Sequence record: MT939492.1 | DNA length: 64,000 bases | Strand: one strand, 5' to 3' | Shown: positions 2,589-39,391 of the stretch, piece after piece | How the letters are laid out: each line of letters starts with the position of its first letter | Position numbering within the stretch: the stretch's first letter is position 1 | The notes under the pieces: model-generated | The model's input: the letters and a program-made list of their open reading frames with translations, nothing else | Database searches by the model: none | Told to the model about the DNA's origin: nothing | Position numbers and translations under genes: made by a program

Positions 2589-4730
2589 ATGTCCAAGATT
2601 ACCTACACCCGCGAACAGCAGCCCCTGACCGTCGAGATCAGTGGCGGTCCCCAGTCCGGCAAGACCTCGGTGGCACGCCTGATCGCAACGGCCCTGCACA
2701 ACTCCGGTATGGAAGTTCTGCTGGCATCCCGTGATGATTTCCCGGCCTACACCACGGCCGAAGGCAACATGGAAAACGTGCCGGTCTTCGTGACTGACTC
2801 CCTGTACGAAGGGCGTCTGTTCGACGGTGGACACTGGAACTGGGAACACGGCAACGACACCGTCATCAGCGGTTCCCCGCAGAGCGAGCCGATCCAGAAC
2901 CGTGGCGACTTCTGGACCAAGGTCGAAGCGACCATCTCGGCCATTGCCCTGCTGGCCGGCACGGCAACCGACGACACCATCCAGACCCTGGTCAACAACC
3001 AGCTGGCCGAACTGGCCACCGATCGCTTCTCGCAGTACCGCCCTCCGGCGGTGGAGATCGAGCGCAACGGCAAGGCCATGCACAAGGTCACGATCAAGGT
3101 CTACGGCCTGTACAGCAGCGAGCCGTTCGAGCGTGAGTACATCCTGTACAACCCGACCCACATCGTCTGCCGCATGCGCAATCCGCGTGACCAGGAAGCC
3201 TACATGGAAACGCCGGCCGTCGCCGAAGACGACATGGCGCGTCATCAGGCCGATCTGGTTGCTCCGCCGGTGGTCAGCCCGGACGACTACATCAGCGTCA
3301 TCGATGTCGTCCAGCGTTCTCTGAGCAGTGCTGTCAATACCCTGCCGATCAGCAGCAAGGAGAACGACGTTGAACGCCGCCTGGACGCCGATGCCATCAA
3401 GCACTTCATCGACTTCGAACTGTACCTGGCCAATCTGAAGAAGGTGGTCGGGGAGGTCGGTATCAAGGTCGAGGCACTGACGGTGAAGGCCCGCATTACC
3501 TTCGTCAACGGTGAAGAGCAGACCAAGGAAGTCGTTCGCCCCGATTCGCTGGAGCTGGGAACCATCCAGCGCATCAGTGCCCTGATGAAGGTGATCTATC
3601 CGGGTATCGTGGCAGTTCACGAAGCGGCCAAGCGTGGCGAAGGTGCCTTCCCGGCCAAGACGATGTCGCAAGCGCTGGACAACGTCAAGTCGGCAGAAAT
3701 CGGTCTGGTCCTGCGCGATCTGGGTATGTCGGTGTCGTTCAGTGCTGATGTGCCGAACGCCAACGGGTGGCGCGAGAAGATCCTCATGATCTTCGATCCG
3801 ACCAGCCACACGCTGGAGCAGGCCCAGTATCTGCGCGACATGGCAGATCAGCTGAATCTGCAGGAAGGTGAGGATCGTATCTTCGGCGCCCAGAACGTCT
3901 CGATCGAGGTGCTGGATGGGCAGCTCCATCCGCTGGTGAAGAAGCTGGCTGTCAACATCGCCAGCTACGTCTCGGCCATCCACGCGGCAGGTTTGGCCGA
4001 TGAAGAAGCAGCCCTGCCGGTCGTCCTGGCCGCCTGCCAGAATGAACTGCGTGACAAGCTGCACTCCTTCGACATCCCGCAGCCGGTCGTCCTGCTGTTC
4101 GCCGAAGAAGGCCACCTGAAGGCCAACGTCACCATCGGCGCCACCCAGGCTCGCCTGTCCGCCCCGTTGACCTTCATCGACTCCGATAGCCTGGCGGCGT
4201 ACTCGCGTTTCCACAACGAGGTCAAGCCGTCGCTGGATCGTCTGACCAACGCCCTGGAAACGTCCGAGATCAAGAGCGATCGTGAACTGCTGCTGGCCTA
4301 TGAAGTCGCCTCGGGCAGTCAGCCCAAGACCGGCATCAATGTCCAGGCGATCGGCGGCATCCTGAGCCTGTTCCGTGACAATGGTCAGCAGTTGCCGGTG
4401 GCGCGTTTCTTCGCCGGTGAGGTTTCGGAAGACTACCAGAAGAGCGAAGCCAAGGTCGAAGAACCGGTGGTCACCCACGTCGGTGACAACTTCCCGCGTT
4501 CCAAGAAGCTGACCGCCGCTCACCTGCGCAAGGTGTGCCGCATCAAGCGTGGCGTGGGTTCGGTGATCGCCCCGGCCCTGAACCAGTGGCCGAAGGTGAA
4601 GACCTTCGACGTTGGCACCGACGACAACCAGCTGTTCAAGGTGCGTCTGCGCGCTACCAAGGATGGTGAAGTTGCCGCTGAAGTCAAGCCGGCCAAGAAG
4701 GCTGTCAAGAAGACCGCCAAGAAGAAGTAA
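2589..4730 (+). CDS. Multidomain protein with an N-terminal P-loop (Walker A) and a Lys/Ala-rich C-terminal tail
   Basis: TVEISGGPQSGKTSVARLIA is a beta-strand plus GxxxxGKT; ends KPAKKAVKKTAKKK. Confidence 0.7.
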   Translation: MSKITYTREQQPLTVEISGGPQSGKTSVARLIATALHNSGMEVLLASRDDFPAYTTAEGNMENVPVFVTDSLYEGRLFDGGHWNWEHGNDTVISGSPQSEPIQNRGDFWTKVEATISAIALLAGTATDDTIQTLVNNQLAELATDRFSQYRPPAVEIERNGKAMHKVTIKVYGLYSSEPFEREYILYNPTHIVCRMRNPRDQEAYMETPAVAEDDMARHQADLVAPPVVSPDDYISVIDVVQRSLSSAVNTLPISSKENDVERRLDADAIKHFIDFELYLANLKKVVGEVGIKVEALTVKARITFVNGEEQTKEVVRPDSLELGTIQRISALMKVIYPGIVAVHEAAKRGEGAFPAKTMSQALDNVKSAEIGLVLRDLGMSVSFSADVPNANGWREKILMIFDPTSHTLEQAQYLRDMADQLNLQEGEDRIFGAQNVSIEVLDGQLHPLVKKLAVNIASYVSAIHAAGLADEEAALPVVLAACQNELRDKLHSFDIPQPVVLLFAEEGHLKANVTIGATQARLSAPLTFIDSDSLAAYSRFHNEVKPSLDRLTNALETSEIKSDRELLLAYEVASGSQPKTGINVQAIGGILSLFRDNGQQLPVARFFAGEVSEDYQKSEAKVEEPVVTHVGDNFPRSKKLTAAHLRKVCRIKRGVGSVIAPALNQWPKVKTFDVGTDDNQLFKVRLRATKDGEVAAEVKPAKKAVKKTAKKK

Positions 4731-4732
4731 CC

Positions 4733-4761
4733 ACATAGAGGGGAGCCTTCGGGCTCCCCTC
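4733..4761 (+). terminator. CATA-flanked hairpin
   Basis: acata-gaggggagcc-ttcg-ggctcccctc; no U-tract. Confidence 0.6.
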
Positions 4762-4781
4762 GACCACCGTAAAGGAAGATC

Positions 4782-5201
4782 ATGGCTCTTTCCCGTGTTG
4801 CCACCCACCTGCCCGCAGTTCCCAAGCAGGTTACCGAGGCCAAGCCTCTGACCTCTGACCAGATCGAACAGCTCAACGCGCTGATCCTGCGTGGTGCTCC
4901 GTTCGATAAGACCACCTACTCCGCCGTGCTGCCGTGGCTGAAGATGCACTTCAGCGACAAGTACGTGCGCGAAGCAATCGAAAAGCTCATCGGCTACCGT
5001 GTTACCGGTGTGGACATGGGTAAGTCCATCGTCTACAACCTCCCGCACAAGAAGCTGGAGCATTCTGCTATCTACACCAAGGATGGCACGTACGGCCTGC
5101 GTGAACGCGGCACGCGCAAGCGTACCATCGTCTTCGTGCAGATCCATTTCGAGAATGGCCTGCACTACATCACCTCGGTCGTCCCGGCCGACAAGCTGTA
5201 A
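4782..5201 (+). CDS. Hypothetical protein
   Basis: 139 aa ORF with RBS aaggaag. Confidence 0.8.
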   Translation: MALSRVATHLPAVPKQVTEAKPLTSDQIEQLNALILRGAPFDKTTYSAVLPWLKMHFSDKYVREAIEKLIGYRVTGVDMGKSIVYNLPHKKLEHSAIYTKDGTYGLRERGTRKRTIVFVQIHFENGLHYITSVVPADKL

Positions 5202-5227
5202 CCCCAACCTTTTTCTTTGCCGCGAAA

Positions 5228-6349
5228 ATGACCACGAAAACTCCCGAACGTACCCTGGTGGTGGCCATCGTCCACACCCTCACCCAGTTCCAACATCTCC
5301 CGCCGCAGTGGCTCGCCAATGACTGCAGGACGCGTATCGTCGTTACCAACGACATGCGCTACGTGATCGAAAATGACAACACGGTCACCAAGAACTTCGA
5401 CATGGGTATCACGACCGATGATGTCAACTTCATCAGCGGTGGTGGCACGCATTCCAACACCCGTCGCAACAACGCCCATCTGACGGATTACGTCGAGGGC
5501 ATGCATTACCAAGCCCGCGAAACCAAGACGGCGCAGACCCTGCGCATGGCCAGCCTTGCCCGCCTGCTTCAGCTGAAGAACTTCATCAGCCCGCGTATCT
5601 ACAGCACCCAGTTCGCCGACAACCGCAATTCGACGTTCGGTCCGGACATCCGTGGCCGCGTCGTGGTCAAGCCGATCGACGGTGCCCGTGGTATCGGTCA
5701 GATCGTGGCCGACATGGACAAGATCACGCCAGCCGCCCTGATGATCCTGATCAAGGCCGCCAAGGACAAGGACGCCTTCCTGGAAGCGCTTGAAAAGCTC
5801 AAGCCGCATGTCGAGTACCATATCGGTCACGGCGATATCGAGGAAGGTCTGACCTCGCTGGTTGAGCAGGGCTTCTTCGTCCAGCAGCAGGTTCCCAACG
5901 TCACGGCCGAGTTCCGCCTGATCCTGACCCACAAGTCTGAAGTGGCGATGATCTTCAAGCGCAAGCGTGACAACATCCCGCTCTCGGACGATGCCAATGC
6001 CTTCGACTACAAGCAGGCCACCGGCGTCACTGTACTGCTGGAAGAAGCCAAGCCGACCGGCGAGTACGAACTGAATGTCCATCTGGATGAGATCACCACG
6101 TTCCTGAAGGAACTGGACATCCCGCTCAACTCGGTGGACCTGTTCTTCACCGACGACGGCAAGTGGGGTGTGTTCGAATACTGCCCGCAGTTCGGCACCG
6201 AGGGTATCGACCAGAAGATCATGGAACCGTTCCTGCGCGCGCAGATCGAGAACATGCTCGGCATCATCCCCATGCTCAACTACATGACTCCGGAAGATAC
6301 CCACCGCGTGATCCGCGCTCAGGGTGTCGAAACGGCTGAACGCTGCTGA
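5228..6349 (+). CDS. ATP-grasp (RimK-like) ligase
   Basis: Motifs in canonical order: VVVKPIDGARGIGQ, FVQQQV..EFRLI, SVDLF..DGKWGVFEYCPQFG. Confidence 0.75.
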   Translation: MTTKTPERTLVVAIVHTLTQFQHLPPQWLANDCRTRIVVTNDMRYVIENDNTVTKNFDMGITTDDVNFISGGGTHSNTRRNNAHLTDYVEGMHYQARETKTAQTLRMASLARLLQLKNFISPRIYSTQFADNRNSTFGPDIRGRVVVKPIDGARGIGQIVADMDKITPAALMILIKAAKDKDAFLEALEKLKPHVEYHIGHGDIEEGLTSLVEQGFFVQQQVPNVTAEFRLILTHKSEVAMIFKRKRDNIPLSDDANAFDYKQATGVTVLLEEAKPTGEYELNVHLDEITTFLKELDIPLNSVDLFFTDDGKWGVFEYCPQFGTEGIDQKIMEPFLRAQIENMLGIIPMLNYMTPEDTHRVIRAQGVETAERC

Positions 6350-7543: not shown

Positions 7544-8911
7544 ATGACCAACAGTCTCCACAACCTTTTCGCCTCCATGGAGGCTGATGAGGCAAACGGC
7601 ACAGCTCAGAAAGAGCTGGAGTACGTGTTCTACGGCAAGCTGACCGACTTCACTGAACTGGAGCGGGCGGCAGGCAAGGAAACCCACGAACAGTGGGAAA
7701 TCCGCGTTGAAGCCGGTGACAAGAATCCCTTCCCGGGCTGCGTGCGTGTGCGCCGCTACCAGGGTGAACGCTACGTCCAGTGCATCAAGGTCATCACTCC
7801 CGGCGAAGACGCCAAGGACGAAGTCGAGCTGGAAGTCACCAAGGACATCTTCGAGTTCGTCAAGAAGCTGGCCACCGGTGGTAGCAACAAGGTTCGCTAC
7901 ATCTTCGAGATCCCCGAATCGAAGAACGTCTGGGAAGTCGACGTCTACGTCAAGCCCGACGGCACCTACGAGGAATGGTGCAAGATCGAGATGGAGGTCA
8001 AGGAACCGGTCGACTCGGTGCCGAAGCTTCCGGTCTCTTGTACCGACGTGATCGTCAACCAGTACAAGAACCGTACCGAAGACGAACACGCCAAGGTCAA
8101 GGAACTGATGAGCACGGTGTTCATCCTGGGCAATCAGTACCTGGCCGGCGCCAGCGAGCTGGGCAATGCCACGCAGGCTACCGACTCCGAGCCGGAAGGC
8201 GAAGCTGACAACCAGGACACCGGCGAAGGCGAACAGCAGACCGACACCGGTTCGGATGAATCCAAGACCGACGACCAGAACAAGGACGGTGGTGATGAAG
8301 GTTCCGCTGAAGGTGATGACAAGAAGGACGAAGGCAAGGGAACCGAGGACGCCACCGCTTCCACCGAGTCCCACGACCACTCCCACCAACCCATCGCCTC
8401 TGCCGACGTCGAAGGCGAAATCAGCGAAGCCCAGCGGGCGCTCCTGAGCGAGCTGTTCACCGGCGACATGATCGTCAACGATGGCCAGGAACAGATCTGC
8501 AAGGAACTGTTCAACCTGCGTGATCGTGGTCTGGTGGAATGCGGCGAGCAGGAAGGCGTGTGGCGCATCTCCGAAGCCGGCCGCGTGTACTACACCGAGA
8601 ACTACCGCATGGAAGACCTGGTGGCTGTGGAAAGCTATCTGGTGGACATGCAGGAACTGGCCGAGCGCGCCGAAGCGCTGGGTTCGGAAATCGGTGTGCT
8701 CACCCCCGTCGAAATGATGGACGACGAGCGTACCGCACCGCTGGTGGAAGAAGCGCGTGAACTGGCCAACCAGACCGCGCTGTCCAAGACCTACCCGACC
8801 GAAGACCCGAACACCATGATTTCCCTGGAGTTCGTCAAGAAGCTGTCCAGCCGCATCGACGCGGGCATGGAAGCTGCGCACAGCCGCATCGCACTGCTGC
8901 GCGGCCGCTAA
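7544..8911 (+). CDS. CYTH (triphosphate tunnel) domain protein with an acidic linker and C-terminal wHTH-like and helical domains
   Basis: KELEYVFY, EQWE, RVR, KVRY.F, WEVDVY and KIEMEV are CYTH motifs; ATG7544 has RBS gagg. Confidence 0.7.
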   Translation: MTNSLHNLFASMEADEANGTAQKELEYVFYGKLTDFTELERAAGKETHEQWEIRVEAGDKNPFPGCVRVRRYQGERYVQCIKVITPGEDAKDEVELEVTKDIFEFVKKLATGGSNKVRYIFEIPESKNVWEVDVYVKPDGTYEEWCKIEMEVKEPVDSVPKLPVSCTDVIVNQYKNRTEDEHAKVKELMSTVFILGNQYLAGASELGNATQATDSEPEGEADNQDTGEGEQQTDTGSDESKTDDQNKDGGDEGSAEGDDKKDEGKGTEDATASTESHDHSHQPIASADVEGEISEAQRALLSELFTGDMIVNDGQEQICKELFNLRDRGLVECGEQEGVWRISEAGRVYYTENYRMEDLVAVESYLVDMQELAERAEALGSEIGVLTPVEMMDDERTAPLVEEARELANQTALSKTYPTEDPNTMISLEFVKKLSSRIDAGMEAAHSRIALLRGR

Positions 8912-29902: not shown

Positions 29903-32119
29903 ATGTCACGTTCCCGTTCCCGCCTGCCTGTCGACCCGGAGTTTGTCGACAAGGGGTATTTCGTCCGTGGTTTGCCCGAGCGCATCCCGGACCGCTACAT
30001 TCCCAACATCCAGATCCCCGGTGCCATCGAGCGCGACCTGCCGTTGATCGCAGGTGTTGTGATGCAGGAACTGCAGGCCGAATACGGCCGGCATGAACTG
30101 CGCAATTTCCTGTACAACATGATGGCCGACAACGAGTTCGACAACAAGGACTACGATGCTCTCATCGGGTCGGTTGCCGAAGCGTTCTTCTTCTTCTACG
30201 AAGGCGAGCGCATGGATGCCGAAGAGGCCCTGCGCAAGGCCACCAAGATCGTGGTGAAGTTCACCATGGCGCTCTTCGTGGAAAAGTACCCGGAACTCGA
30301 TGAATACATCGACAACCGCATGGACCGCGAGCTGCGCGATGCCATGGATGATGGTCGCGACCTGATCGCCGATATCGAAGACTTCAGCCGTGGTGGTGGT
30401 CGTCGTGGTGGCCGTGGTCGTGATCGCGATGACCGTGATGATCGTCGTGACGACCGTCGTGGTGGTGGTCGTCGTGGTAGCCGTGAAGATGGCGGCTACC
30501 ATGGCAACGGCACTCGCGGCTACCGTGATGGTGGTCGTCGTCGTGACGAGGCCGATGAAGAAGCAACGGCTACGCGTCGTGGCGGCATGGCTGGTGCAGT
30601 ACGTGCGTCGAGCAAGGGCGACCGTACCGAGCGCACCGATCGTGATGATCGTCGCAACCGCCGTGACTCCTCGCGCAATGATCGTGATCGCGAGTTCAGC
30701 AACGGCGATATCGAAGAGCGCTCTGGCAACGACCTGCACGCGGTGGAAGAAGAGCTGCATGCTTCTCCGCAGGGCAGCAACTACCAGAACCACGAAGCAC
30801 AGCGCAAGGCCGACGCCAAGGGTGGTGCAATGCCGAAGCTGTTTGACCGCAGCGCCGGGCGTGTCGTGTCCTCCGGTGAAGTTGCCAAGGACAAGGTGCT
30901 GATCGACAACATCCGTGCCGGTCGTCCCTATGACCGCGTGGACCTGGAAGACGGTTCGTTCGTCGTCCCGGAAGTGCTGAGCACCCACAAGAAGACCTTC
31001 AGCCCGGAGCAGCCGTTCGCTCTGGTCTACGACCCCGCCCTCTTCGTGAAGTTCCACCGGGTTTACCCGGATGGTCGTGTCGAAGAAATCGTGAAAGAGC
31101 GCAACGAAGATATGGACTACCTGGACCTGGAAACCAACGACAACCTCAAGACCAAGGCGCAACATCAGCGTCGCCAGGGTCGTGTGGATCCCCGCTACGA
31201 TCTGGTGGCCAACATGCACAAGAAGGGCGAAAAGATGGTCGGCGTCGAGCCGGCAGCGCCGAAGGACGTCGAAGAAGGCGCCGACGCTACCTTCGACAAC
31301 CTGGTCTTCGGCCAGGATCTGGAAGTGGGCGACGTGGCAACCACCGTTCCGGCCATGTCGGTGGCTCAGGCCATCGCGATGACCGAAGTGGTGTCGGCCG
31401 AGAATGAAGGTGAGGACACCCCCAAGGAGTTCTACATCGACATCCTCACCCCGCACCTGGTGGAAACCAACCTGATCGGCGCGTTCCTGGCCATCGGCAA
31501 GGAAAAGACCGTGCAGGCTGCGCTGGCCAAGTTCTCCCAGCTCCAGGGTCAGGAAGACGTGCCGGTTCGTCTGTGGCATCAGCTCAACGATGCGCTGACC
31601 GCTCGCGTCAACTACCTGCTGAAGAACTCGATGGGGCTGAGCTGGACCATCGATACCGCTGCCGATGACTTCGGTGATCTGCTGAAGGCGATGCAGGCCA
31701 AGCCGGCTGTCGGCGTGGCTGCTGCCAACCTGCTGAACTCCAAGGTCGACGAGGTGTTCAACTCGGTGATGCGTGTGCTCAAGGACGAGGAGCTGGCTCG
31801 CTACTCCGAAGAGTACGGCAAGCCGGGTGCCGGTCTGCACTGGCTGGTATTCGCTCGTCGCCAGTCGGTGACGCTGCTGAGCTGGTCCAGCGCTGACATG
31901 GGCCCGTCGCTGGTCAACGGTGGCGCTGTCTCCGAGCAGCTCTACCCGAGCCTGCACCAGTCGCTGGAGCGTCTGCTGCAGCGTACCTCGATCGTCGGTG
32001 GCGAGTTCTGCCATCGTTACCTGGTGACCGAGGACAACGTGGTGTACGACCTGCAGGTGGGCTTCTTCAACAACAGCCACTACGTACTGACGCCGTCCAA
32101 CGTCAGCATCATGGGCTAA
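29903..32119 (+). CDS. Conserved protein with a central Arg/Gly/Asp-rich disordered region
   Basis: RGGGRRGGRGRDRDDRDDRRDDRRGGGRR low-complexity tract at about 30380-30720. Confidence 0.8.
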   Translation: MSRSRSRLPVDPEFVDKGYFVRGLPERIPDRYIPNIQIPGAIERDLPLIAGVVMQELQAEYGRHELRNFLYNMMADNEFDNKDYDALIGSVAEAFFFFYEGERMDAEEALRKATKIVVKFTMALFVEKYPELDEYIDNRMDRELRDAMDDGRDLIADIEDFSRGGGRRGGRGRDRDDRDDRRDDRRGGGRRGSREDGGYHGNGTRGYRDGGRRRDEADEEATATRRGGMAGAVRASSKGDRTERTDRDDRRNRRDSSRNDRDREFSNGDIEERSGNDLHAVEEELHASPQGSNYQNHEAQRKADAKGGAMPKLFDRSAGRVVSSGEVAKDKVLIDNIRAGRPYDRVDLEDGSFVVPEVLSTHKKTFSPEQPFALVYDPALFVKFHRVYPDGRVEEIVKERNEDMDYLDLETNDNLKTKAQHQRRQGRVDPRYDLVANMHKKGEKMVGVEPAAPKDVEEGADATFDNLVFGQDLEVGDVATTVPAMSVAQAIAMTEVVSAENEGEDTPKEFYIDILTPHLVETNLIGAFLAIGKEKTVQAALAKFSQLQGQEDVPVRLWHQLNDALTARVNYLLKNSMGLSWTIDTAADDFGDLLKAMQAKPAVGVAAANLLNSKVDEVFNSVMRVLKDEELARYSEEYGKPGAGLHWLVFARRQSVTLLSWSSADMGPSLVNGGAVSEQLYPSLHQSLERLLQRTSIVGGEFCHRYLVTEDNVVYDLQVGFFNNSHYVLTPSNVSIMG

Positions 32120-33512: not shown

Positions 33513-36500
33513 TCAGTTCTGCTTAGCCTGTTCCATCGAGACGATCTTGACGGGCAGTCGGAATGCGCCATCGGCGTTGGCACGTGCCAGACGCTTCATG
33601 CCATCCAGAATGACCACACGACCATCTTCCTCGCGCACGCCTACCAGCGGGTAGCTGTAGTCGGCACGGGATACCAGACGCGGGGAAAGCGAGCCGGCCT
33701 GCTGCAGGTTGAACCGCAGATCCTTCACTTCCACCGACTCCGGTTCAATGGAGTGGGCTGCACGCAGCAGCGGGTTGATCGGACGACTCACGGCCTCGTA
33801 GAAGTAGGTACGATCATCGGCTTCCTGGTAGAGGTCGGCAATGGACTCGGTGGATGCCTCCTCACCGGTTTCCTCCTCAGCGCCAGTTTCGGCCGCTGCC
33901 TCTTCCTCGCCGGTTTCGGTCTGCTCCTCTTCTTCCTGCTCCTCTTCCTCTTCACCCGTGTCGGTCTGCTCTTCCTCACCGGTGTCCTGCGTTTCGTCAG
34001 GATTCTCGGTGTCAGTGCCGAACTCGTCCGCACCAGTGCCCATTCCGTCATCAGCGCCCGGACCAGCGCCACCGTCATCCGGCGGAGTTTCGTCCTGCGG
34101 CTCACGTGCCTCGACCAACTTCTTGATCTTGTCCATGTACTTGCCGAAGACCTTGTACAGCGTCTTCATGTGGTCATGGGTGGAATCGAAGATGTTGACC
34201 TTGCTCACGCCCTTCTCATCCAGCTCCATCAGCTCGAACAGCTCGGGCATGATGTTGTTGGTGCGCAGGTACTGACGCAGGTAGTGCGCCTTGGTCAGAG
34301 CGACCAGGCCTTCCACGGCACTGGAGATATCGGTGTTCTGATCGCCACCGCCATCGAACATTTCCTTGCTGATGTAGGCAGGCAGGACTTCATCCAGGGC
34401 TTCGCGGTACTCCTTGTACGCGTCGATCTGAACCTTGACCTTGGTCGTGTCCGGCGAAGGCAGTTCGCAGATGATCGAGTCGATGAACAGCTTGACGACG
34501 TTGTCGACGTTCAGTTCCTGACCATGGGTCTGGATGTACTGACGGACTTCATCGCCCAGCTTGCCCTTGTTCTCGACGATGATCTTGCGCAGACGATCCA
34601 GCAGCGTGCCGGAGTTGTAGGTGTACTTCTGCACGAAGTCAGTGACATGCGGGCAGAACTGTTCCTGCGTCTTCATCACGCGCTTGGTCAGCAGCAGGTT
34701 GTTGGTCACCGCCGTGGTCGCAAACTCCGGACCCTGGGCGTTGTCCACCATCTCCACCGGGATACCCAGCGACAGCGAGTGGTTCTTGCGCAGCAGGTTG
34801 TCCAGATCCAGATCCGGCTTGTTGACCGATGCTGCGAAGTCCTCGGCGTTGACTTCCGTGTTGGGGTAGCCATCGTTACCACTGACCACTACTTCCACAC
34901 CTGCGTTCTGCAGGAAGGAGATGATGTCCAACGGGTTGGAGGCACCCAGCGGGTAAGCCTGCTGACGGTTCTTGGAGAACTCGCCGATGATGAACTCGAC
35001 GGTATCCACCGGATCGTCGTCACGCTCATCGAGCTTGATGTTCAGCTTCGTACGACCCACCGAGTTACGCAGCGAACCCATCGTGTTGGCGAACATCAGG
35101 ATCGCCCGCATGCCGCCGAGGATCTTGGTGTCTTCCAGCAACGAACGACCGATGCCGAACTTGTTGTAGTCGATGGCGAAGTAGGTCACCATTTCAGCCG
35201 GGACGTACAGCAGACGCGTGTCCTGGTTGGCCAGGGTACGGGCCAGCATGATCCGGTAGACTTCTTCCGGACGAGCGATGGTGACGTTGGCACCTGCAGC
35301 ACCTGCACGCAGACGTGCCAGAACGTTCTGCTCGACCATGTCCGTGTAGGCGCGCTGGAGCGACTCACCGTCGATCTCGTTGTTGCCCTTCATGCCGTAC
35401 GTGCCGCGATGGGTCGACTGGATCAGCTGACTGATCATGTCGTTGTTCGCGTTCACGTTCTGGTTGAGCTGACCGTAGTAGTCGTCCTGGGTCGCCTTGT
35501 TGACCAGATGACCCTGCTCGTCGCAGACCAGGAAATAGCCGATGTGATCGGACGGATCGGACGGTACGAATACCGGGATCACTGCTTCCGACGGCGCCTC
35601 GATGACCAGCGGATGGCCCTTGGTCTTGGACTTGAGCTGATCACGGGTGTACAGGGTCTGCACCGGCATCGATGCGTAACGGCGCTGGGTGTACAGTGCC
35701 GACTGCACTTCCATCAGGGTCGGCTTGCCGTCAGTGCCAAGCGACTCCGTAGCCACCGTCACCTTGGGCAGGTTCAGCAGACCCTTGCGGTTGTTGCGAC
35801 GCTTGAGGATGGCGTCACTGCGATGATGAATGGCAGCCTGCGCCAGCGCAGGCATCTTCAGCATCTCGGGGTTGTCGGTGATGACCAGTCGACCGGCCTT
35901 GGCGGCATTGCTATCGCCGAAGGGACGGAAGACGGGGTTGTAGCTCTGGTTGGCATGCTGACCACTGCCACTGAACGACTCCAGAGCGAAGCCCACGCCA
36001 GCGGCCGTAGAAGTGCCCTTGGCGGCATCGCCAGCCGCTTCCTTAGGCTGACCCAGCCAGCCCAGGCAATTGCCGTCCACGCCTTCCACGGCAGCCTTGA
36101 CGGACTCCATGGAGGTGCGGGTCGGGTTGTTGATGACGTCGTCGATCGTGGACTCGGACAGGATGATCATCGGGCGGGAGCCGCGGTGATACAGGATGTC
36201 CTCCAACAATGTCGGAAGTCGGCTGTCCATCTTATAGACTTGCGAGAAGTGGGTAGAAACCACGTCCAGCAACAGGCCGGAGAGCTCGCTGTCGAAGATG
36301 CCATCCTGGACGCGATAGTTCAGCTTCGCGTTGATCATGTCCTTCGGGGACAGGATCGAGCTGACCATGATCTGCATGTTCAAACGCAGATCCGGCAGCA
36401 GCTGCATCAGGTTGGCCGAGTCGGTGACGTTGGTGGCCGTGTTGTCACTGAGCTTGGTGAAGAACTGATCACCCGGCAGGTTCACTTCACGACGGCGGAA

Positions 36501-36647
36501 CATCCCACCAGTCTGGACTTCCCGGTTGGCGTAGACCAACTTGGAAACCAGCGAACCGAGCTGCGGGCTGTTCTTCAGGGCCCCGATCTTCGGCATTGCC
36601 TTTCGGCGATCGCTGTCCTTCGAAAAGACGGGCGGCAGGTTGCTCAT
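33513..36647 (-). CDS. Portal protein (phiKZ gp129-like) with a C-terminal ParB/Srx-like domain
   Basis: DLRLNMQIMVSSILSPKD, PSEAVIPV.VP..P..HIGYF and KFGIGRSLLE are typical of the family; divergent from the baseplate gene as in phiKZ-like phages. Confidence 0.75.
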   Translation of the reverse strand: MSNLPPVFSKDSDRRKAMPKIGALKNSPQLGSLVSKLVYANREVQTGGMFRRREVNLPGDQFFTKLSDNTATNVTDSANLMQLLPDLRLNMQIMVSSILSPKDMINAKLNYRVQDGIFDSELSGLLLDVVSTHFSQVYKMDSRLPTLLEDILYHRGSRPMIILSESTIDDVINNPTRTSMESVKAAVEGVDGNCLGWLGQPKEAAGDAAKGTSTAAGVGFALESFSGSGQHANQSYNPVFRPFGDSNAAKAGRLVITDNPEMLKMPALAQAAIHHRSDAILKRRNNRKGLLNLPKVTVATESLGTDGKPTLMEVQSALYTQRRYASMPVQTLYTRDQLKSKTKGHPLVIEAPSEAVIPVFVPSDPSDHIGYFLVCDEQGHLVNKATQDDYYGQLNQNVNANNDMISQLIQSTHRGTYGMKGNNEIDGESLQRAYTDMVEQNVLARLRAGAAGANVTIARPEEVYRIMLARTLANQDTRLLYVPAEMVTYFAIDYNKFGIGRSLLEDTKILGGMRAILMFANTMGSLRNSVGRTKLNIKLDERDDDPVDTVEFIIGEFSKNRQQAYPLGASNPLDIISFLQNAGVEVVVSGNDGYPNTEVNAEDFAASVNKPDLDLDNLLRKNHSLSLGIPVEMVDNAQGPEFATTAVTNNLLLTKRVMKTQEQFCPHVTDFVQKYTYNSGTLLDRLRKIIVENKGKLGDEVRQYIQTHGQELNVDNVVKLFIDSIICELPSPDTTKVKVQIDAYKEYREALDEVLPAYISKEMFDGGGDQNTDISSAVEGLVALTKAHYLRQYLRTNNIMPELFELMELDEKGVSKVNIFDSTHDHMKTLYKVFGKYMDKIKKLVEAREPQDETPPDDGGAGPGADDGMGTGADEFGTDTENPDETQDTGEEEQTDTGEEEEEQEEEEQTETGEEEAAAETGAEEETGEEASTESIADLYQEADDRTYFYEAVSRPINPLLRAAHSIEPESVEVKDLRFNLQQAGSLSPRLVSRADYSYPLVGVREEDGRVVILDGMKRLARANADGAFRLPVKIVSMEQAKQN

Positions 36648-36691
36648 TATCCACTCCAGTACACAAACAATTTAGAAGGGAGGACGCAGCG

Positions 36692-39391
36692 GTGTCCACT
36701 GCGTATTACAAACTTTACGTCGCCGACGTTCTTGCATTGTCGCGCTCGCTGGTCATCAAGTCCGCCGATGCTGCCGAGGCGAGCAATCGGTATCTTCGTG
36801 AGCTCGGCTACGAAGTGCGTGACGAAGATCCCAGTAGCTGGCGTTATTACAGGAACATGGCCGGCGAGTATCATCCAGCGGACAAACTGATGTATGTCAC
36901 CTCGCTGGACACGCTTCAAAGAATAGAGTTCACCAAGGAAAGTTTGGCTGAGCATCGCGTCACCAAGCGCGAATACTCCACCCACGGGGACTACTACAAG
37001 CAGCTTCGGGAGAAATACCCGGCGCAGGTCGGACTGATCAACGGTATCCTCAACCCGATCGATCTGACCGCTGGGTTCACTCCCAACGACGTGGACGCTG
37101 CCGACTTCTCCACGATCTACAACTGCGCCGACGGCACGATCTTGTACTACGATCAGACGTTGGTGGAGAGCAACGAGCGCAACCTGATCCCGCAGCTGGA
37201 GGCATGGCTGCGCCGTGTCCTGATCCGCTGGATCGTTCCGGGGTTCCAGCTCACCGACGACATGTACTTCGGTGCGATGTTTGCAGCCATCGGCTCGAAC
37301 ATCCCCGGCAAGATCATGGGTATCCGTGACAGCAATGCGCACACTCGCTACGCGCACAGCTTCCACATCCGCGAGTTCCTGGCCAGCCATGGCAAGCTGG
37401 ACACGTTCATCGACACGCTGACCAAGAAGCAGATGCTGTGGCTGTATCGCAACATCCGCTACATCGAGCGCAATCCGGGTAAGCAGGAGACCTTCGATGA
37501 TCTGCTGCAGAACCTGCTGACCGAACGCGGCATCCCGCTGGCCAAGTGGGACATTCGCCACGACCTGGAAGAGCAGCCGGACAACATCTCCCCCACTCCG
37601 CGCTTGTTCCGTACTGCGTTGAACTTCGGGTTCAATCAGACCGGTGACGATGTGCGTAGCGTGGCGCGCATGTTGGATGCGGAGCAGCCTGCGGCAAAGG
37701 ATAACGCTTCCATCCAGGGTTACGAGGAGCCTCTGATCACCGAGGCCATCCAGACCGCTGCAATGGATGCGTTCCCGACGAAGGTACTTGAATCGGCCAT
37801 GCTGGATCTGACCGACTCGATGCCCTTCACGCTGTCGGACACCCTGCTCAACCACTGGATCTTCTGGAGCAACAACGATCGCTACACGCCGGTTATCACC
37901 GTGCCCGATCCTCGTTCGGGTGAAGGTGTACGGATGACGGTACGCAACGCGTTCATCGTCTACCTGTGGGCTTACAACAAGTCTCGCGGTGTCGACCTGG
38001 TACGCTTGCCGAAGCTGGAGGCTCGCCATATCCTCCGTGATCCTGCTCCGCGTCCGTCTGAGCTGTGGACCATCGTCGATCGCAAGTACGTCAAGGACAA
38101 CATCGTAGAGGCTCTCTACGCTGGTCACCCGGACATGATCCCCAGCAAGATCATCTCCACGGTCACCTTCTACGAAGCCTGTCAGGAGATCTTCAACTAC
38201 ACCATGCACCAGCGCGACGTTTACGCCGCCCAGGAGCATGAGATGACTCGTGGCATGACCGAGGCGCTTGCGCACCGGTTCTTCTATAACGTCCCGGTGG
38301 ACTTCGGCATGAGTCTGTACTACGAGGACTGGCTGACCGAGAACAACTACCTGATCCACGACTACAGCGTCTTGGAGCTGGATCTGTTCGCCTCGAACAT
38401 CCTGAAGGTTGCAACCGGGATGGACAGCACCAACACCAAGTCGGCTAAGGAGCTGCAGCAGGCGATGATCTCGCTGATGGAGCAGCTGTCCAGCTATTCC
38501 ATCCAGTTCATCTCCTCCATCAACTCCGATGCGTTGAAGATGGCTGACTTCGCTGTCATCCGTCTGGGCGATGACTACACCACCGCTGGCGATACCACGG
38601 ACCTGTCCAAGCTGGCCGTGCGTGTGCTCAGTGCTGACACGTTGGCTCGACATGAAGTTGAGTACGACATGATCGGTGATCTGGTGGAGTTCGATGTGAC
38701 GTCCACCAAGCTCCACGAGCTGGACGTAGACTTCTCGGTTGGCTTTGAAGGCGGTCTCTCTCGCGAGGTCACTGAGAACGTGGACATGCTCAATGTGCGA
38801 TTCTCCATCGTGCAGGAGCCGTCCAAGACGCTGGCCAGTCAGATCACCAAGACCACGCTGCCCGTGTTCGATGCTACTGCTCGCTTCACGGCGGGTAAGT
38901 ATCTGGCCACAGACAGCAACCCGCTGTTGGCAATGCCCAATGGCTGGTCGGTGATTCGACGCATGAACGATGACAACAACGCGGCAGTGTATCCCCATAA
39001 CGCTACGATCGCTCGTACCGGTATGGTGGGTGCAAATGCCAAGGTGCTGGTGACCGCTGTTCCTCCGCGCAATACGGCAGAGGTTGAGCGTTACACCGGC
39101 GTCATCGAACTGCAGGCGCCGCTGCTGGATCTGGCCACGTACTTCACTGGTGCTAACCTGCGCTGGGACGGAGACGTGCGTCCGATGGACGTCTACGAGA
39201 TCGTGGACTGGCTCAATCGCAAGTACGGCATGGAGCTGGCTCGCGATGAATTCGTCTACGCTGCAATCGCCGCCAATGCAACCTCGGTGACGATGAGTGC
39301 CTCGACCAAGAGCATGCGACTGAAGGGAAGCTTCACTGTCCAGATTCCGGCCAGTAGCTTCATGGGTAAGCTGGCAGAGATGTTCGGCTAA
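36692..39391 (+). CDS. Conserved virion (baseplate-associated) protein
   Basis: GTG with RBS ggagg; SWRYY.NMAGEYHP and SLDT..I.F motifs typical of the phiKZ-like gene next to the portal; C-terminal anchor-like module. Confidence 0.7.
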   Translation: MSTAYYKLYVADVLALSRSLVIKSADAAEASNRYLRELGYEVRDEDPSSWRYYRNMAGEYHPADKLMYVTSLDTLQRIEFTKESLAEHRVTKREYSTHGDYYKQLREKYPAQVGLINGILNPIDLTAGFTPNDVDAADFSTIYNCADGTILYYDQTLVESNERNLIPQLEAWLRRVLIRWIVPGFQLTDDMYFGAMFAAIGSNIPGKIMGIRDSNAHTRYAHSFHIREFLASHGKLDTFIDTLTKKQMLWLYRNIRYIERNPGKQETFDDLLQNLLTERGIPLAKWDIRHDLEEQPDNISPTPRLFRTALNFGFNQTGDDVRSVARMLDAEQPAAKDNASIQGYEEPLITEAIQTAAMDAFPTKVLESAMLDLTDSMPFTLSDTLLNHWIFWSNNDRYTPVITVPDPRSGEGVRMTVRNAFIVYLWAYNKSRGVDLVRLPKLEARHILRDPAPRPSELWTIVDRKYVKDNIVEALYAGHPDMIPSKIISTVTFYEACQEIFNYTMHQRDVYAAQEHEMTRGMTEALAHRFFYNVPVDFGMSLYYEDWLTENNYLIHDYSVLELDLFASNILKVATGMDSTNTKSAKELQQAMISLMEQLSSYSIQFISSINSDALKMADFAVIRLGDDYTTAGDTTDLSKLAVRVLSADTLARHEVEYDMIGDLVEFDVTSTKLHELDVDFSVGFEGGLSREVTENVDMLNVRFSIVQEPSKTLASQITKTTLPVFDATARFTAGKYLATDSNPLLAMPNGWSVIRRMNDDNNAAVYPHNATIARTGMVGANAKVLVTAVPPRNTAEVERYTGVIELQAPLLDLATYFTGANLRWDGDVRPMDVYEIVDWLNRKYGMELARDEFVYAAIAANATSVTMSASTKSMRLKGSFTVQIPASSFMGKLAEMFG

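Follow-up and report, generated by a model that had tools for sequence, protein, structure and literature searches.

A ParB/sulfiredoxin-fold domain at the C-terminus of the jumbo phage Xoo-sp14 portal protein as candidate capsid-interior cargo

Why would a portal protein end in a domain of the ParB/sulfiredoxin (ParB/Srx) type? The question is raised by Xanthomonas phage Xoo-sp14, a jumbo phage (sequence record MT939492.1), of which we analyzed a stretch of 64,000 nucleotides, referred to here as the window. The portal gene, Xoosp14_126, lies on the minus strand at 33513..36647 and encodes 1044 amino acids (aa) plus a stop codon, according to both the open reading frame (ORF) list and the GenBank annotation. 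The portal body (residues 1–850; 34098..36647, minus strand) is homologous to phiKZ gp129 and other chimallivirus portals: residues 1 to ~850 match PDB 9xpe_M (PHIKZ129; 12 chains per entry) with an E-value of 8.8e-127, and the body is also matched to two further solved jumbo-phage portals, while the Xoo-sp14 portal hits phrog_3004 with an E-value of 5e-221. phiKZ gp129 is a dodecameric, T4-like portal (PMC13250141). The body is followed by an acidic low-complexity tail or linker, delineated by composition (residues 851–934; 33846..34097, minus strand), and by the domain in question (residues 935–1044; 33516..33845, minus strand). The original prediction had described this sequence exactly: window 33516-33860(-) translates as ...EEASTE|SIADLYQEADD...RADYSYPLVGVREEDGRVVILDGMKRLARANADGAFRLPVKIV...stop, the C-terminal end of an uninterrupted 1044-aa ORF. 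The Xoo-sp14 portal is a phiKZ gp129-type portal with an ancestral acidic C-terminal tail, extended by a 110-aa ParB/Srx-fold domain of the phrog_17560 family.

The family and fold of the tail domain were approached with sequence profiles and a structural model. The domain matches phrog_17560 with an E-value of 4.1e-10, residues 10–112 aligning to profile positions 5–109 of 119 (105/119 covered), and 56 homologs, mostly solo genes, are found at E ≤ 1e-3 among 1.84 billion representative proteins. A 37-member family profile (alignment A1) matches the ParB/Srx-fold kinase SbnI with an E-value of 1e-6. The AlphaFold (AF2) model of the domain (pLDDT 89.2, pTM 0.78) matches 55 chains with Z of at least 5, the best at Z 7.8 over 76 residues at 2.9 Å. 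All interpretable top Foldseek/VIA rows are ParB/Srx proteins (i.e., Srx, Noc, ParB, SerK, SbnI, and KorB) with Z between 6 and 7.8; a Z below 8 is middling by itself, and the sequence profile backs the fold assignment. Viral structure matches include proteins already named ParB/Sulfiredoxin-domain proteins. Based on profile and modeled structure, the tail domain is assigned to the ParB/Srx (sulfiredoxin-like) fold superfamily, and the match anticipated in the original prediction is borne out by profile, fold, and viral structures alike. Pfam gave no match to the domain alone, and single family members reached ParBc_2 or ParB_N only below threshold. Similarly, phmmer with the single domain against the PDB returned only a chance match to CheY, and a word-indexed protein search found no relative within the domain's own length band.

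The same ~110-aa domain is found end to end in solo proteins of PHROG 17560, such as Pseudomonas phage EL ORF075 (gp75), labeled by UniProt as a ParB/Sulfiredoxin-domain protein, and gp29 of Xoo-sp14 itself. Shared features include the Y-x-E start, a β-hairpin, an AD-S-P-[IL]-[IL]-V strand, and the D-G-x-x-R-L-x-K-A motif. The N-terminal family signature is the YQE motif of the portal copy (Y940 and E942; 33822..33830, minus strand, coordinates checked), whose Y and E do not vary across the 37 aligned sequences. The second signature, DGMKR (residues 1015–1019; 33591..33605, minus strand), is predicted from alignment A1 to be the ParB/Srx phosphate-binding strand-helix motif, and it aligns to DGVHR of SbnI. 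Its D, G, and R are invariant in the 37 members, whereas H is present in 36 of them and K in the Xoo-sp14 portal copy only, which upholds the alteration of DGxHR to DGMKR that had been read from this sequence. The K is kept as DG[M/L]KR in all members of the Xoo-sp14 clade. Unlike the solo proteins, which are free-standing, 110–130 aa long, and carry the canonical DGxHR, a W, and FTHxG, the portal copy is fused and has DGMKR, F, and YFYEAV in their place, the FTHxG hairpin being lost. It retains Y-x-E, R62, P71, and D-G-x-x-R; its branch in the tree is long (1.72 substitutions per site), and those within the clade are short. By homology, the portal copy appears to be a PHROG 17560 member that is atypical at its presumed active site; with a near-invariant H, W, and FTHxG lost and a long branch, it may no longer be an enzyme.

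Among solved structures, the closest relatives by profile are SbnI and the archaeal free serine kinase SerK (PDB 5uje, 5ujd, 6nr6, and 5x0b; E-values of 1e-6 to 1.6e-5). The alignment runs through P-[IV]-L-V ... V-I-D-G-V-H-R ... P-V, and the folds superimpose with Z of 6.1–7.3. In SbnI and SerK (~240–250 aa in total), a second, C-terminal domain completes the substrate site. Only their N-domain aligns (profile 57–110 to chain 31–86), and the second domain is absent from the phage module, which amounts to a bare N-domain with its own Y-x-E hairpin. The same α/β fold recurs in the N-terminal CTPase domain of ParB, Noc, and KorB and in sulfiredoxin (Z of 6.5–7.8 over 67–84 aligned residues), and a conserved Arg at the nucleotide-phosphate-binding strand-helix junction is common to all of them and the phage module. 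Unlike ParB, Noc, and KorB, the module has no helix-turn-helix (HTH), C-terminal dimerization domain, GERRxR, Box I, Box III, or ParA/parS context. Nor does it look like a bona fide clamp of this class: the protein ends 25 residues past the motif, Pfam ParB_N is undetected, and the genomic context is a portal gene. Likewise, the catalytic Cys of sulfiredoxin (GGCHR) is absent, the corresponding motif being DGMKR here and DGxHR in the family.

Is the fusion genuine? It could in principle be an artefact of MT939492, the loss of a stop codon or an erroneous frameshift having merged two neighboring genes, and a sequencing error of this kind had been named from the outset as what would undo the prediction. 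Such an error is excluded by the same continuous, uninterrupted ORF in four independent, metagenome-derived IMG/VR viral contigs that represent three distinct relatives with 98, 76, and 71% identity. Contig G001 has a 1044-aa ORF with 98% identity, and the 76% and 71% identical contigs include the domain. In addition, no solo ParB/Srx gene adjoins the portal gene in related phages, and the next gene is convergent to it, leaving an artefact with practically no chance of being the explanation. The fusion is genuine and confined to the Xoo-sp14 lineage, where it is under purifying selection, with dN/dS values compared to relatives of 0.14–0.17 for the domain and 0.17–0.23 for the portal body.

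These values also bear on whether the fused copy is a decaying, functionless passenger, acquired by chance recombination of a solo ParB/Srx gene onto the end of the portal gene. The departures from the family signatures (K for H, F for W, and no FTHxG) and the long stem branch are what decay would produce, and the canonical solo copy could supply the real function. Against this, dN/dS remains at 0.14–0.17 across relatives of 71–76% identity, the domain has no frameshift or stop in any of the four genomes, and the Y-x-E, R62, P71, and D-G-x-x-R residues persist; a long stem followed by short within-clade branches is the pattern of a new function, not of decay. We consider a passenger very improbable.

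How widespread is such a portal? The statement in the original prediction that portals do not normally carry this domain is right for phiKZ-type portals: the domain is absent from all 289 other phage records, including the nearest isolates RTH11 and LucasX, in every one of which the tblastn portal match stops at or before ~residue 850. Literature searches found nothing relevant on a portal–ParB fusion in jumbo phages. The module is nonetheless found on other proteins. The virion RNA polymerase (vRNAP) β′ subunit of RP12-like phages bears it; in RP12, this subunit, the homolog of phiKZ gp180, has the module at its C-terminus behind A-x-E motifs. A further fusion is gp140 of phage PA5oct, annotated as a structural protein found by ESI-MS/MS; the text of the PA5oct paper says nothing on gp140. 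Metagenomic relatives of the Xoo-sp14 module occur in polyvalent-type portal and MuF proteins. For instance, P0019, encoded near a terminase gene, joins a portal (phrog_146, E-value of 3e-94; Phage_portal_3) to InPase, GNAT, and phrog_17560 (E-value of 1e-18) domains; P0008 combines MuF, phrog_17560 (E-value of 6e-17), and a T7-like RNAP; P0009 combines the module with MuF; and P0026 combines it with a cell-wall hydrolase. Two giants with RTX and Ig repeats (P0037 and P0042) were set aside as spurious short matches. The module is anchored to different head-assembly or virion proteins, namely a phiKZ-type portal in Xoo-sp14, a Phage_portal_3 portal in P0019, MuF in P0008 and P0009, and vRNAP β′ in RP12. 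Since it sits on packaged or ejected proteins of unrelated phages, it behaves as a portable capsid-cargo module.

A similar logic is known from polyvalent phage proteins, in which an effector-type domain is packaged via a head-assembly protein (portal or MuF) and ParB/Srx is a recurring effector. The available excerpts of Iyer et al. (2017, PMC5512222) describe portal- and MuF-fused effectors and head-packaged ParB domains, including the DdrB-like ParB of phage P1, with proteolytic processing being common; neither the present module family nor a phiKZ-type portal is described in those excerpts. Unlike polyvalent proteins, Xoo-sp14 has a single small domain on the phiKZ-type portal of a nucleus-forming jumbo phage. 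A relation to the N-terminal domain of P1 DdrB was not found: hhalign of A1 to DdrB, a comparison of a profile with a single sequence, gave a probability of 0.5% and an E-value of 0.11 over an unrelated stretch, although such a comparison could miss a very distant relation.

If the domain is cargo, how could it be detached from the portal? The 84-aa linker (residues 851–934) contains 27 E and 10 D and no K, R, or H, resulting in a net charge of −37, and it includes nine [SAG]-x-E motif matches. An acidic or Gly-rich tail also ends the portals of phiKZ, RTH11, LucasX, FLC9, and FLC1-1B. Within the Xoo-sp14 clade, the linker is 68–74% identical and varies by indels; despite this variability, the EEASTESI sequence at its end is invariant across all clade members. 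With its S-x-E followed directly by S, the ASTE|S junction itself (residues 931–935; 33843..33857, minus strand, coordinates checked) is a candidate site for the prohead protease. The genome's six-frame ORFs contain just one further ASTES, which closes the acidic linker of a CYTH protein and is kept there as [A/S]-T-E-S in relatives. A resembling ESTES at the end of the phiKZ gp129 tail was discounted: the alignment is between low-complexity acidic tails, and RTH11, LucasX, FLC9, and FLC1-1B do not have it. The [SAG]-x-E motif is not enriched in the proteome (922 observed versus 925 in shuffles; the greedy ORF set of this test took a 1045-aa antisense ORF instead of the portal, and its STES and ASTES counts are underestimated). 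Since it is not enriched and the portal alone has 23 such motifs, a lone match says little.

The enzyme that would make the cut is present. Xoo-sp14 encodes a homolog of phiKZ gp175 (MEROPS S80 prohead protease type; E-value of 2.3e-35) at 164974-165651 of the sequence record, found with phiKZ gp175 as the query; Pfam Peptidase_S77 (T4 gp21) did not detect a prohead protease. To our knowledge, no portal of the phiKZ/SPN3US phage group is documented to release a C-terminal part. Proteases of the gp175 type recognize A-x-E or S-x-E and cut behind the Glu, and DNA and vRNAP are ejected together (PMC5694885, PMC10052503). The known propeptides of SPN3US are N-terminal with a single exception, and its portal is cleaved close to the N-terminus (PMC5694885 / PMC10052503). 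Judged from sequence, ASTE|S is a candidate gp175-type site: it lies at the end of a disordered acidic linker, does not vary within the clade, and recurs in the CYTH protein.

We favor, at somewhat better than even confidence, an explanation in which the domain travels as cargo inside the capsid, is probably cut loose by the gp175-type prohead protease, and can leave with the DNA. By homology to T4 gp20 and phiKZ gp129, the portal C-termini are expected to face the capsid interior, and the fusion would therefore equip each prohead with 12 internal copies of the domain. The gp175-type protease, cutting after S/A/G-x-E, would probably detach the domain at ASTE|S or at another of the many motifs in the linker, and the detached domain would be a free internal head protein able to leave with the DNA. 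This recalls the internal proteins of T4, where cargo enters the prohead on an assembly component, is freed by the prohead protease after Glu, and is delivered to the host; engineered C-terminal fusions to T4 gp20 are tolerated, and capsid-targeted cargo is processed and delivered into cells (PMC9026906). The T4 cargo differs in being targeted by a short N-terminal peptide that binds to the scaffold core and in being present in 20–200 copies, compared to a portal carrier, a C-terminal cargo, and a fixed 12 copies proposed for Xoo-sp14. Of the two functions suggested in the original prediction, release inside the head appears to fit the evidence best, given the recurrent packaged carriers, the gp175-type protease, and the conserved and reused [A/S]-T-E|S. 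Sensing at the phage nucleus is topologically unlikely: the C-terminus points into the capsid by homology, and the domain is near-neutral (pI 5.8), with no HTH or other DNA-binding part found in it.

The domain may alternatively stay covalently attached. In that case, twelve ParB/Srx domains on long acidic linkers would stand above the portal crown and work in cis at the packaging or the ejection stage. They could form a switch that depends on nucleotides, plug or retain the DNA end that was packaged last, or make contact with proteins of the inner body or of ejection. The N-domains of the ParB family are self-associating NTP-dependent switches, and the structural matches include ParB, Noc, and KorB in their CTP-bound form. 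The domain is also as tightly conserved as the portal body, and the acidic tail is ancestral in phiKZ-type portals and therefore presumably has a role of its own. We nevertheless hold permanent attachment to be unlikely. The near-neutral charge and lack of a DNA-binding part argue against it, as do the nine protease-motif matches in the linker and the reuse of the junction motif in the CYTH protein; furthermore, the occurrence of the module on the capsid-leaving vRNAP β′ and on MuF-type proteins points to a function independent of the portal.

Cleavage could also have another purpose, with the domain working only before or during assembly (e.g., by helping the portal to fold, starting the ring, or bringing the portal or nucleotides to the assembly site) and then being cut off, degraded, and expelled from the head like most propeptides. 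Propeptides of the phiKZ group are cleared from heads once cleaved, extra sites aiding the clearance of fragments (PMC5694885), and three S-x-E matches (SIE, SVE, and SME) are located inside the domain. Yet 289 related portals assemble without it, and a folded, enzyme-like module that occurs independently (56 homologs, mostly solo) would be an odd choice of propeptide. That the module also turns up on vRNAP and MuF proteins speaks for a role once packaging is over. Taken as a whole, an assembly aid seems distinctly improbable.

What would the freed domain do? By analogy to other ParB/Srx proteins, it most likely depends on nucleotides for its activity, be it NTP binding, NTP hydrolysis, or phosphotransfer, and the portal copy may have an altered specificity or be binding-only. 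A bolder version of the cargo explanation, which we regard as doubtful, makes the portal a delivery vehicle for an early-acting enzyme: twelve retooled ParB/Srx copies (K for H) would be freed by the protease, injected with the genome, and target nucleic acid or nucleotides of the host or the phage, e.g., in counter-defense or to prime the first transcription by the vRNAP ejected with them. If true, PHROG 17560 would be a new class of ejected phage effectors common to portals, MuF proteins, and virion RNA polymerases of two kinds.

The heads of jumbo phages contain dozens of internal and ejected proteins, and a natural, conserved, enzyme-like fusion at the portal C-terminus would be a simple route of head loading with fixed stoichiometry. 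The chimallivirus portal C-terminus seems to tolerate cargo, which suggests a use in phage engineering and capsid labeling. PHROG 17560, in turn, gains a consistent setting; riding on portals, MuF proteins, and virion RNA polymerases, the module is a good candidate for an early-infection factor. The family is not exclusively virion cargo, since the canonical standalone paralog of Xoo-sp14, gp29 (DGLHR), annotated as "putative chromosome partitioning protein parB", has nucleotide-metabolism genes and not head genes as neighbors. An origin of the fused copy by intragenomic duplication of gp29 is unsupported, the fused clade grouping apart from gp29 in a tree of 109 columns with many forks unresolved. 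Solo and fused copies are both retained in two relatives whose genomes are 99–100% complete, and the pair in one genome, with H versus K at the phosphate site, offers a natural experiment in which the two can be compared directly.

The window derives from the Xanthomonas oryzae jumbo phage Xoo-sp14 (MT939492.1, 100% identity), placed among nucleus-forming chimalliviruses in a published genome tree (bioRxiv 10.1101/2024.03.21.585822). Its gene Xoosp14_126 (33513..36647, minus strand) encodes a protein of 1044 aa, annotated merely as a 'putative virion structural protein'. Residues ~1-850 make up a phiKZ gp129-type portal body, which matched PDB entry 9xpe chain M (PHIKZ129, 12 chains per entry; E 8.8e-127), two further solved jumbo-phage portals in the PDB, and phrog_3004 (E 5e-221). 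In phiKZ, gp129 is a dodecameric portal with a T4-like fold (PMC13250141). The body is followed by an acidic low-complexity tail (residues 851-934; 27 E, 10 D, zero basic residues, net charge -37) and by a C-terminal ParB/Srx domain (residues 935-1044), whose translation contains RADYSYPLVGV and ILDGMKRLARA, and which the original prediction had quoted exactly to the base. An antisense ORF of 1045 aa (33753-36890, plus strand) overlaps the portal gene fully and takes its place in naive longest-ORF gene calling; at the genome's 58% GC, such a frame is almost certainly just a non-coding shadow. Two genes away from the portal gene, Xoosp14_124 (29903-32119, plus strand, 738 aa) contains a long Arg/Gly/Asp-rich low-complexity region (RGGGRRGGRGRDRDDRDDRRDD...) around residues 160-260.

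The portal domain by itself matched no Pfam family. It aligned nearly end to end with PHROG 17560 (E 4e-10), a family of ~119-aa proteins with no assigned function, and HMMER, run exhaustively over 1.84 billion representative proteins, returned 56 relatives at E<=1e-3, the majority of them solo proteins of 110-130 aa. An alignment of 37 family members, the portal copy included, defined an initial Y-x-E, an FTHxG..Y.LN hairpin, a conserved W, R..AD.S.P[IL][IL]V, and D-G-x-H-R-L-x-K-A as family signatures. Searched against the PDB, the profile of this alignment found the ParB/Srx-fold kinase SbnI (E 1e-6), aligned via P-I-L-V ... V-I-D-G-V-H-R ... P-V, and, weakly, ParB/Spo0J. With the same alignment as input, AlphaFold2 gave a confident model of the portal domain (pLDDT 89.2, pTM 0.78), for which all interpretable Foldseek rows against the PDB were ParB/Srx proteins (Noc, ParB, SbnI, sulfiredoxin, free serine kinase, KorB, PadC, Osa). 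In VIA-align, 55 chains reached Z>=5, with a top Z of 7.8. The best matches in a viral structure library were the C-terminus of the RP31 'RNA polymerase beta prime' (E 1e-10, TM 0.85) and EL Q2Z106, named in UniProt a ParB/Sulfiredoxin domain-containing protein. The structural Z is middling alone, but joined with the sequence-profile match it makes membership in the ParB/Srx superfamily secure, as originally predicted. Within the superfamily, the domain lacks the HTH, GERR boxes, and dimerisation domain of a partition ParB, the catalytic Cys of a sulfiredoxin, and the second domain of a full SbnI/SerK, and so is none of these.

The fusion is genuine and conserved. A sequencing error joining two genes is excluded by IMG/VR viral contigs carrying the same ORF: one of 33.7 kb has an ORF of identical length (1044 aa, 98% identity), and a pattern scan found three more with domain-bearing portals (76% and 71% identity across the final 300 aa), uninterrupted in all cases. 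Codon analysis against these relatives gave dN/dS of 0.14-0.17 for the domain and 0.17-0.23 for the portal body, with an indel-rich linker between them that changes faster than both. The eight-residue junction EEASTESI is invariant across the clade, and every member has DG[M/L]KR. Portals of the phiKZ type normally lack this domain, as had been proposed for portals: homologous portals in 289 other phage records match only up to residue ~850 and do not have it. In RTH11 and LucasX, the isolates nearest to Xoo-sp14, and in FLC9 and FLC1-1B, the portal ends in an acidic or Gly-rich tail with no domain, and an acidic tail also terminates phiKZ gp129. The acidic tail is therefore ancestral, and the ParB/Srx domain was appended to its end solely in the Xoo-sp14 lineage.

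Xoo-sp14 also encodes a canonical solo paralog, gp29 (MT939492.1 26202-26552, plus strand, outside the window; 1501-1851 of locus L011), of 116 aa. It keeps DGLHR, the W, and a TFT.NG hairpin, and is the better match to the family profile (E 2e-36, versus 2e-33 for the portal copy). A gene annotated as dTMP kinase lies on one side of it and a thymidylate synthase-annotated gene (407 aa, directly downstream) on the other, with a DHFR-annotated gene nearby; this nucleotide-metabolism neighbourhood hints at a nucleotide-related family activity. Both copies are retained in two 99-100% complete relatives. In a maximum-likelihood tree of 109 columns, poorly resolved, the portal copies cluster tightly, with a very long stem (1.72 substitutions per site; median tip 0.69), apart from gp29 and weakly nearest to copies fused to RP12-type virion RNA polymerase (vRNAP). 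The predicted change of DGxHR to DGMKR holds, with K replacing H in the portal copy alone among the 37 aligned members; its W and hairpin signatures are altered as well. The fused copy could be read as a decaying passenger, but strong constraint after a long stem points to a change of function, not decay.

The same module recurs on other packaged proteins. In RP12 ORF042 (3330-5324 of locus L003), as in RP31, FLC1-1B, and FLC4-3B, it ends a 664-aa protein whose N-terminal ~540 residues share homology with phiKZ gp180 and with genes that carry a virion-associated RNAP beta' annotation; other chimallivirus gp180 homologs end at about residue 540, without the module. In phiKZ, gp180 is one of the virion RNA polymerase subunits. 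The vRNAP is ejected together with DNA (PMC5694885). Similarly, PA5oct gp140, annotated as a 'structural protein' detected by ESI-MS/MS, ends in the module. Among metagenomic proteins, P0019 (6001-10878 of locus L025) combines a portal of a family other than the phiKZ type (phrog_146, E 3e-94) with inorganic pyrophosphatase, GNAT, and phrog_17560 (E 1e-18) domains, and is encoded two genes from a large terminase. P0008 has phrog_17560 with MuF (head morphogenesis) on one side and a T7-like RNA polymerase on the other, and P0009 has it N-terminal to MuF. P0019 and P0008 are both large head proteins of the polyvalent kind, and P0008 resembles an N4-type virion RNAP. Other fusions are to cell-wall hydrolase, GNAT, P-loop kinase-like (AAA_33), and LigD 3'-phosphoesterase domains. 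This architecture logic is shared with the 'polyvalent' phage proteins, described by Iyer et al. (PMC5512222) as carrying effector domains on MuF or portal domains; there, the effectors include another ParB/Srx family, with the head-packaged P1 DdrB as prototype, to which our family profile showed no relation. Phage ParB/Srx domains and portal- and MuF-anchored effectors are known themes; the literature searched held no phiKZ-type portal with such a domain, no mention of PHROG 17560 recurring as capsid cargo, and none of its double association with virion RNA polymerases.

T4 gp20 tolerates C-terminal fusions (PMC9026906). Since the C-terminal crown faces the capsid interior in the established portal topology, twelve domain copies would enter each prohead. 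Sensing at the phage nucleus, as first suggested, is unlikely because this end of the portal is on the wrong side for it. The Xoo-sp14 genome has a homolog of gp175, the phiKZ head protease (E 2e-35), a type that cleaves after Glu at A-x-E or S-x-E (PMC5694885, PMC10052503). The portal linker contains nine such motif matches, the final one, ASTE|S, at its end. Cleavage in the linker would free a ~12-kDa ParB/Srx module within the head, which may exit with the DNA; alternatively, the domain could stay tethered as a switch at the portal crown or be a propeptide serving assembly only. The superfamily predicts a nucleotide-dependent activity for the domain, and the K-for-H change and near-neutral surface (pI 5.8) make an altered-specificity enzyme or binder more likely than a DNA clamp.

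The junction motifs are pointers to domain release, not proof, and any N- or C-terminal processing in Xoo-sp14 is putative. The [SAG]-x-E class was not enriched in the Xoo-sp14 proteome, counted on an ORF set in which the antisense ORF replaced the portal. Among all six-frame ORFs of the genome, ASTES occurs twice only, in the portal and in a 455-aa CYTH-like protein (window 7544-8911; record 69544-70911; plus strand) that matches CYTH weakly (Pfam E 0.0018) and phrog_14791 (E 5e-39). The two are alike in layout and junction pentapeptide: in the latter, a globular CYTH-like domain is joined by an acidic linker of variable sequence to ASTE|S and then a conserved C-terminal region that weakly matches a transcriptional regulator, and two relatives keep [A/S]-T-E-S while the linker varies. 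In the vRNAP fusions, A/S-x-E stands one or two residues ahead of the Y-x-E start, where solo members are mostly hydrophobic, and the RP12-type module is preceded by AIE|S and ALE|G. Two further proteins, both outside the window, matched no family label. One of 585 aa (MT939492.1 49439-51196, plus strand) has N-terminal AME|S, AVE|S, and STE|S motifs, then an acidic stretch, and one of 292 aa (phrog_4682; 137964-138842, minus strand) has ISTE|S at residue 36; from their sequences, both resemble head or ejection proteins that carry propeptides.
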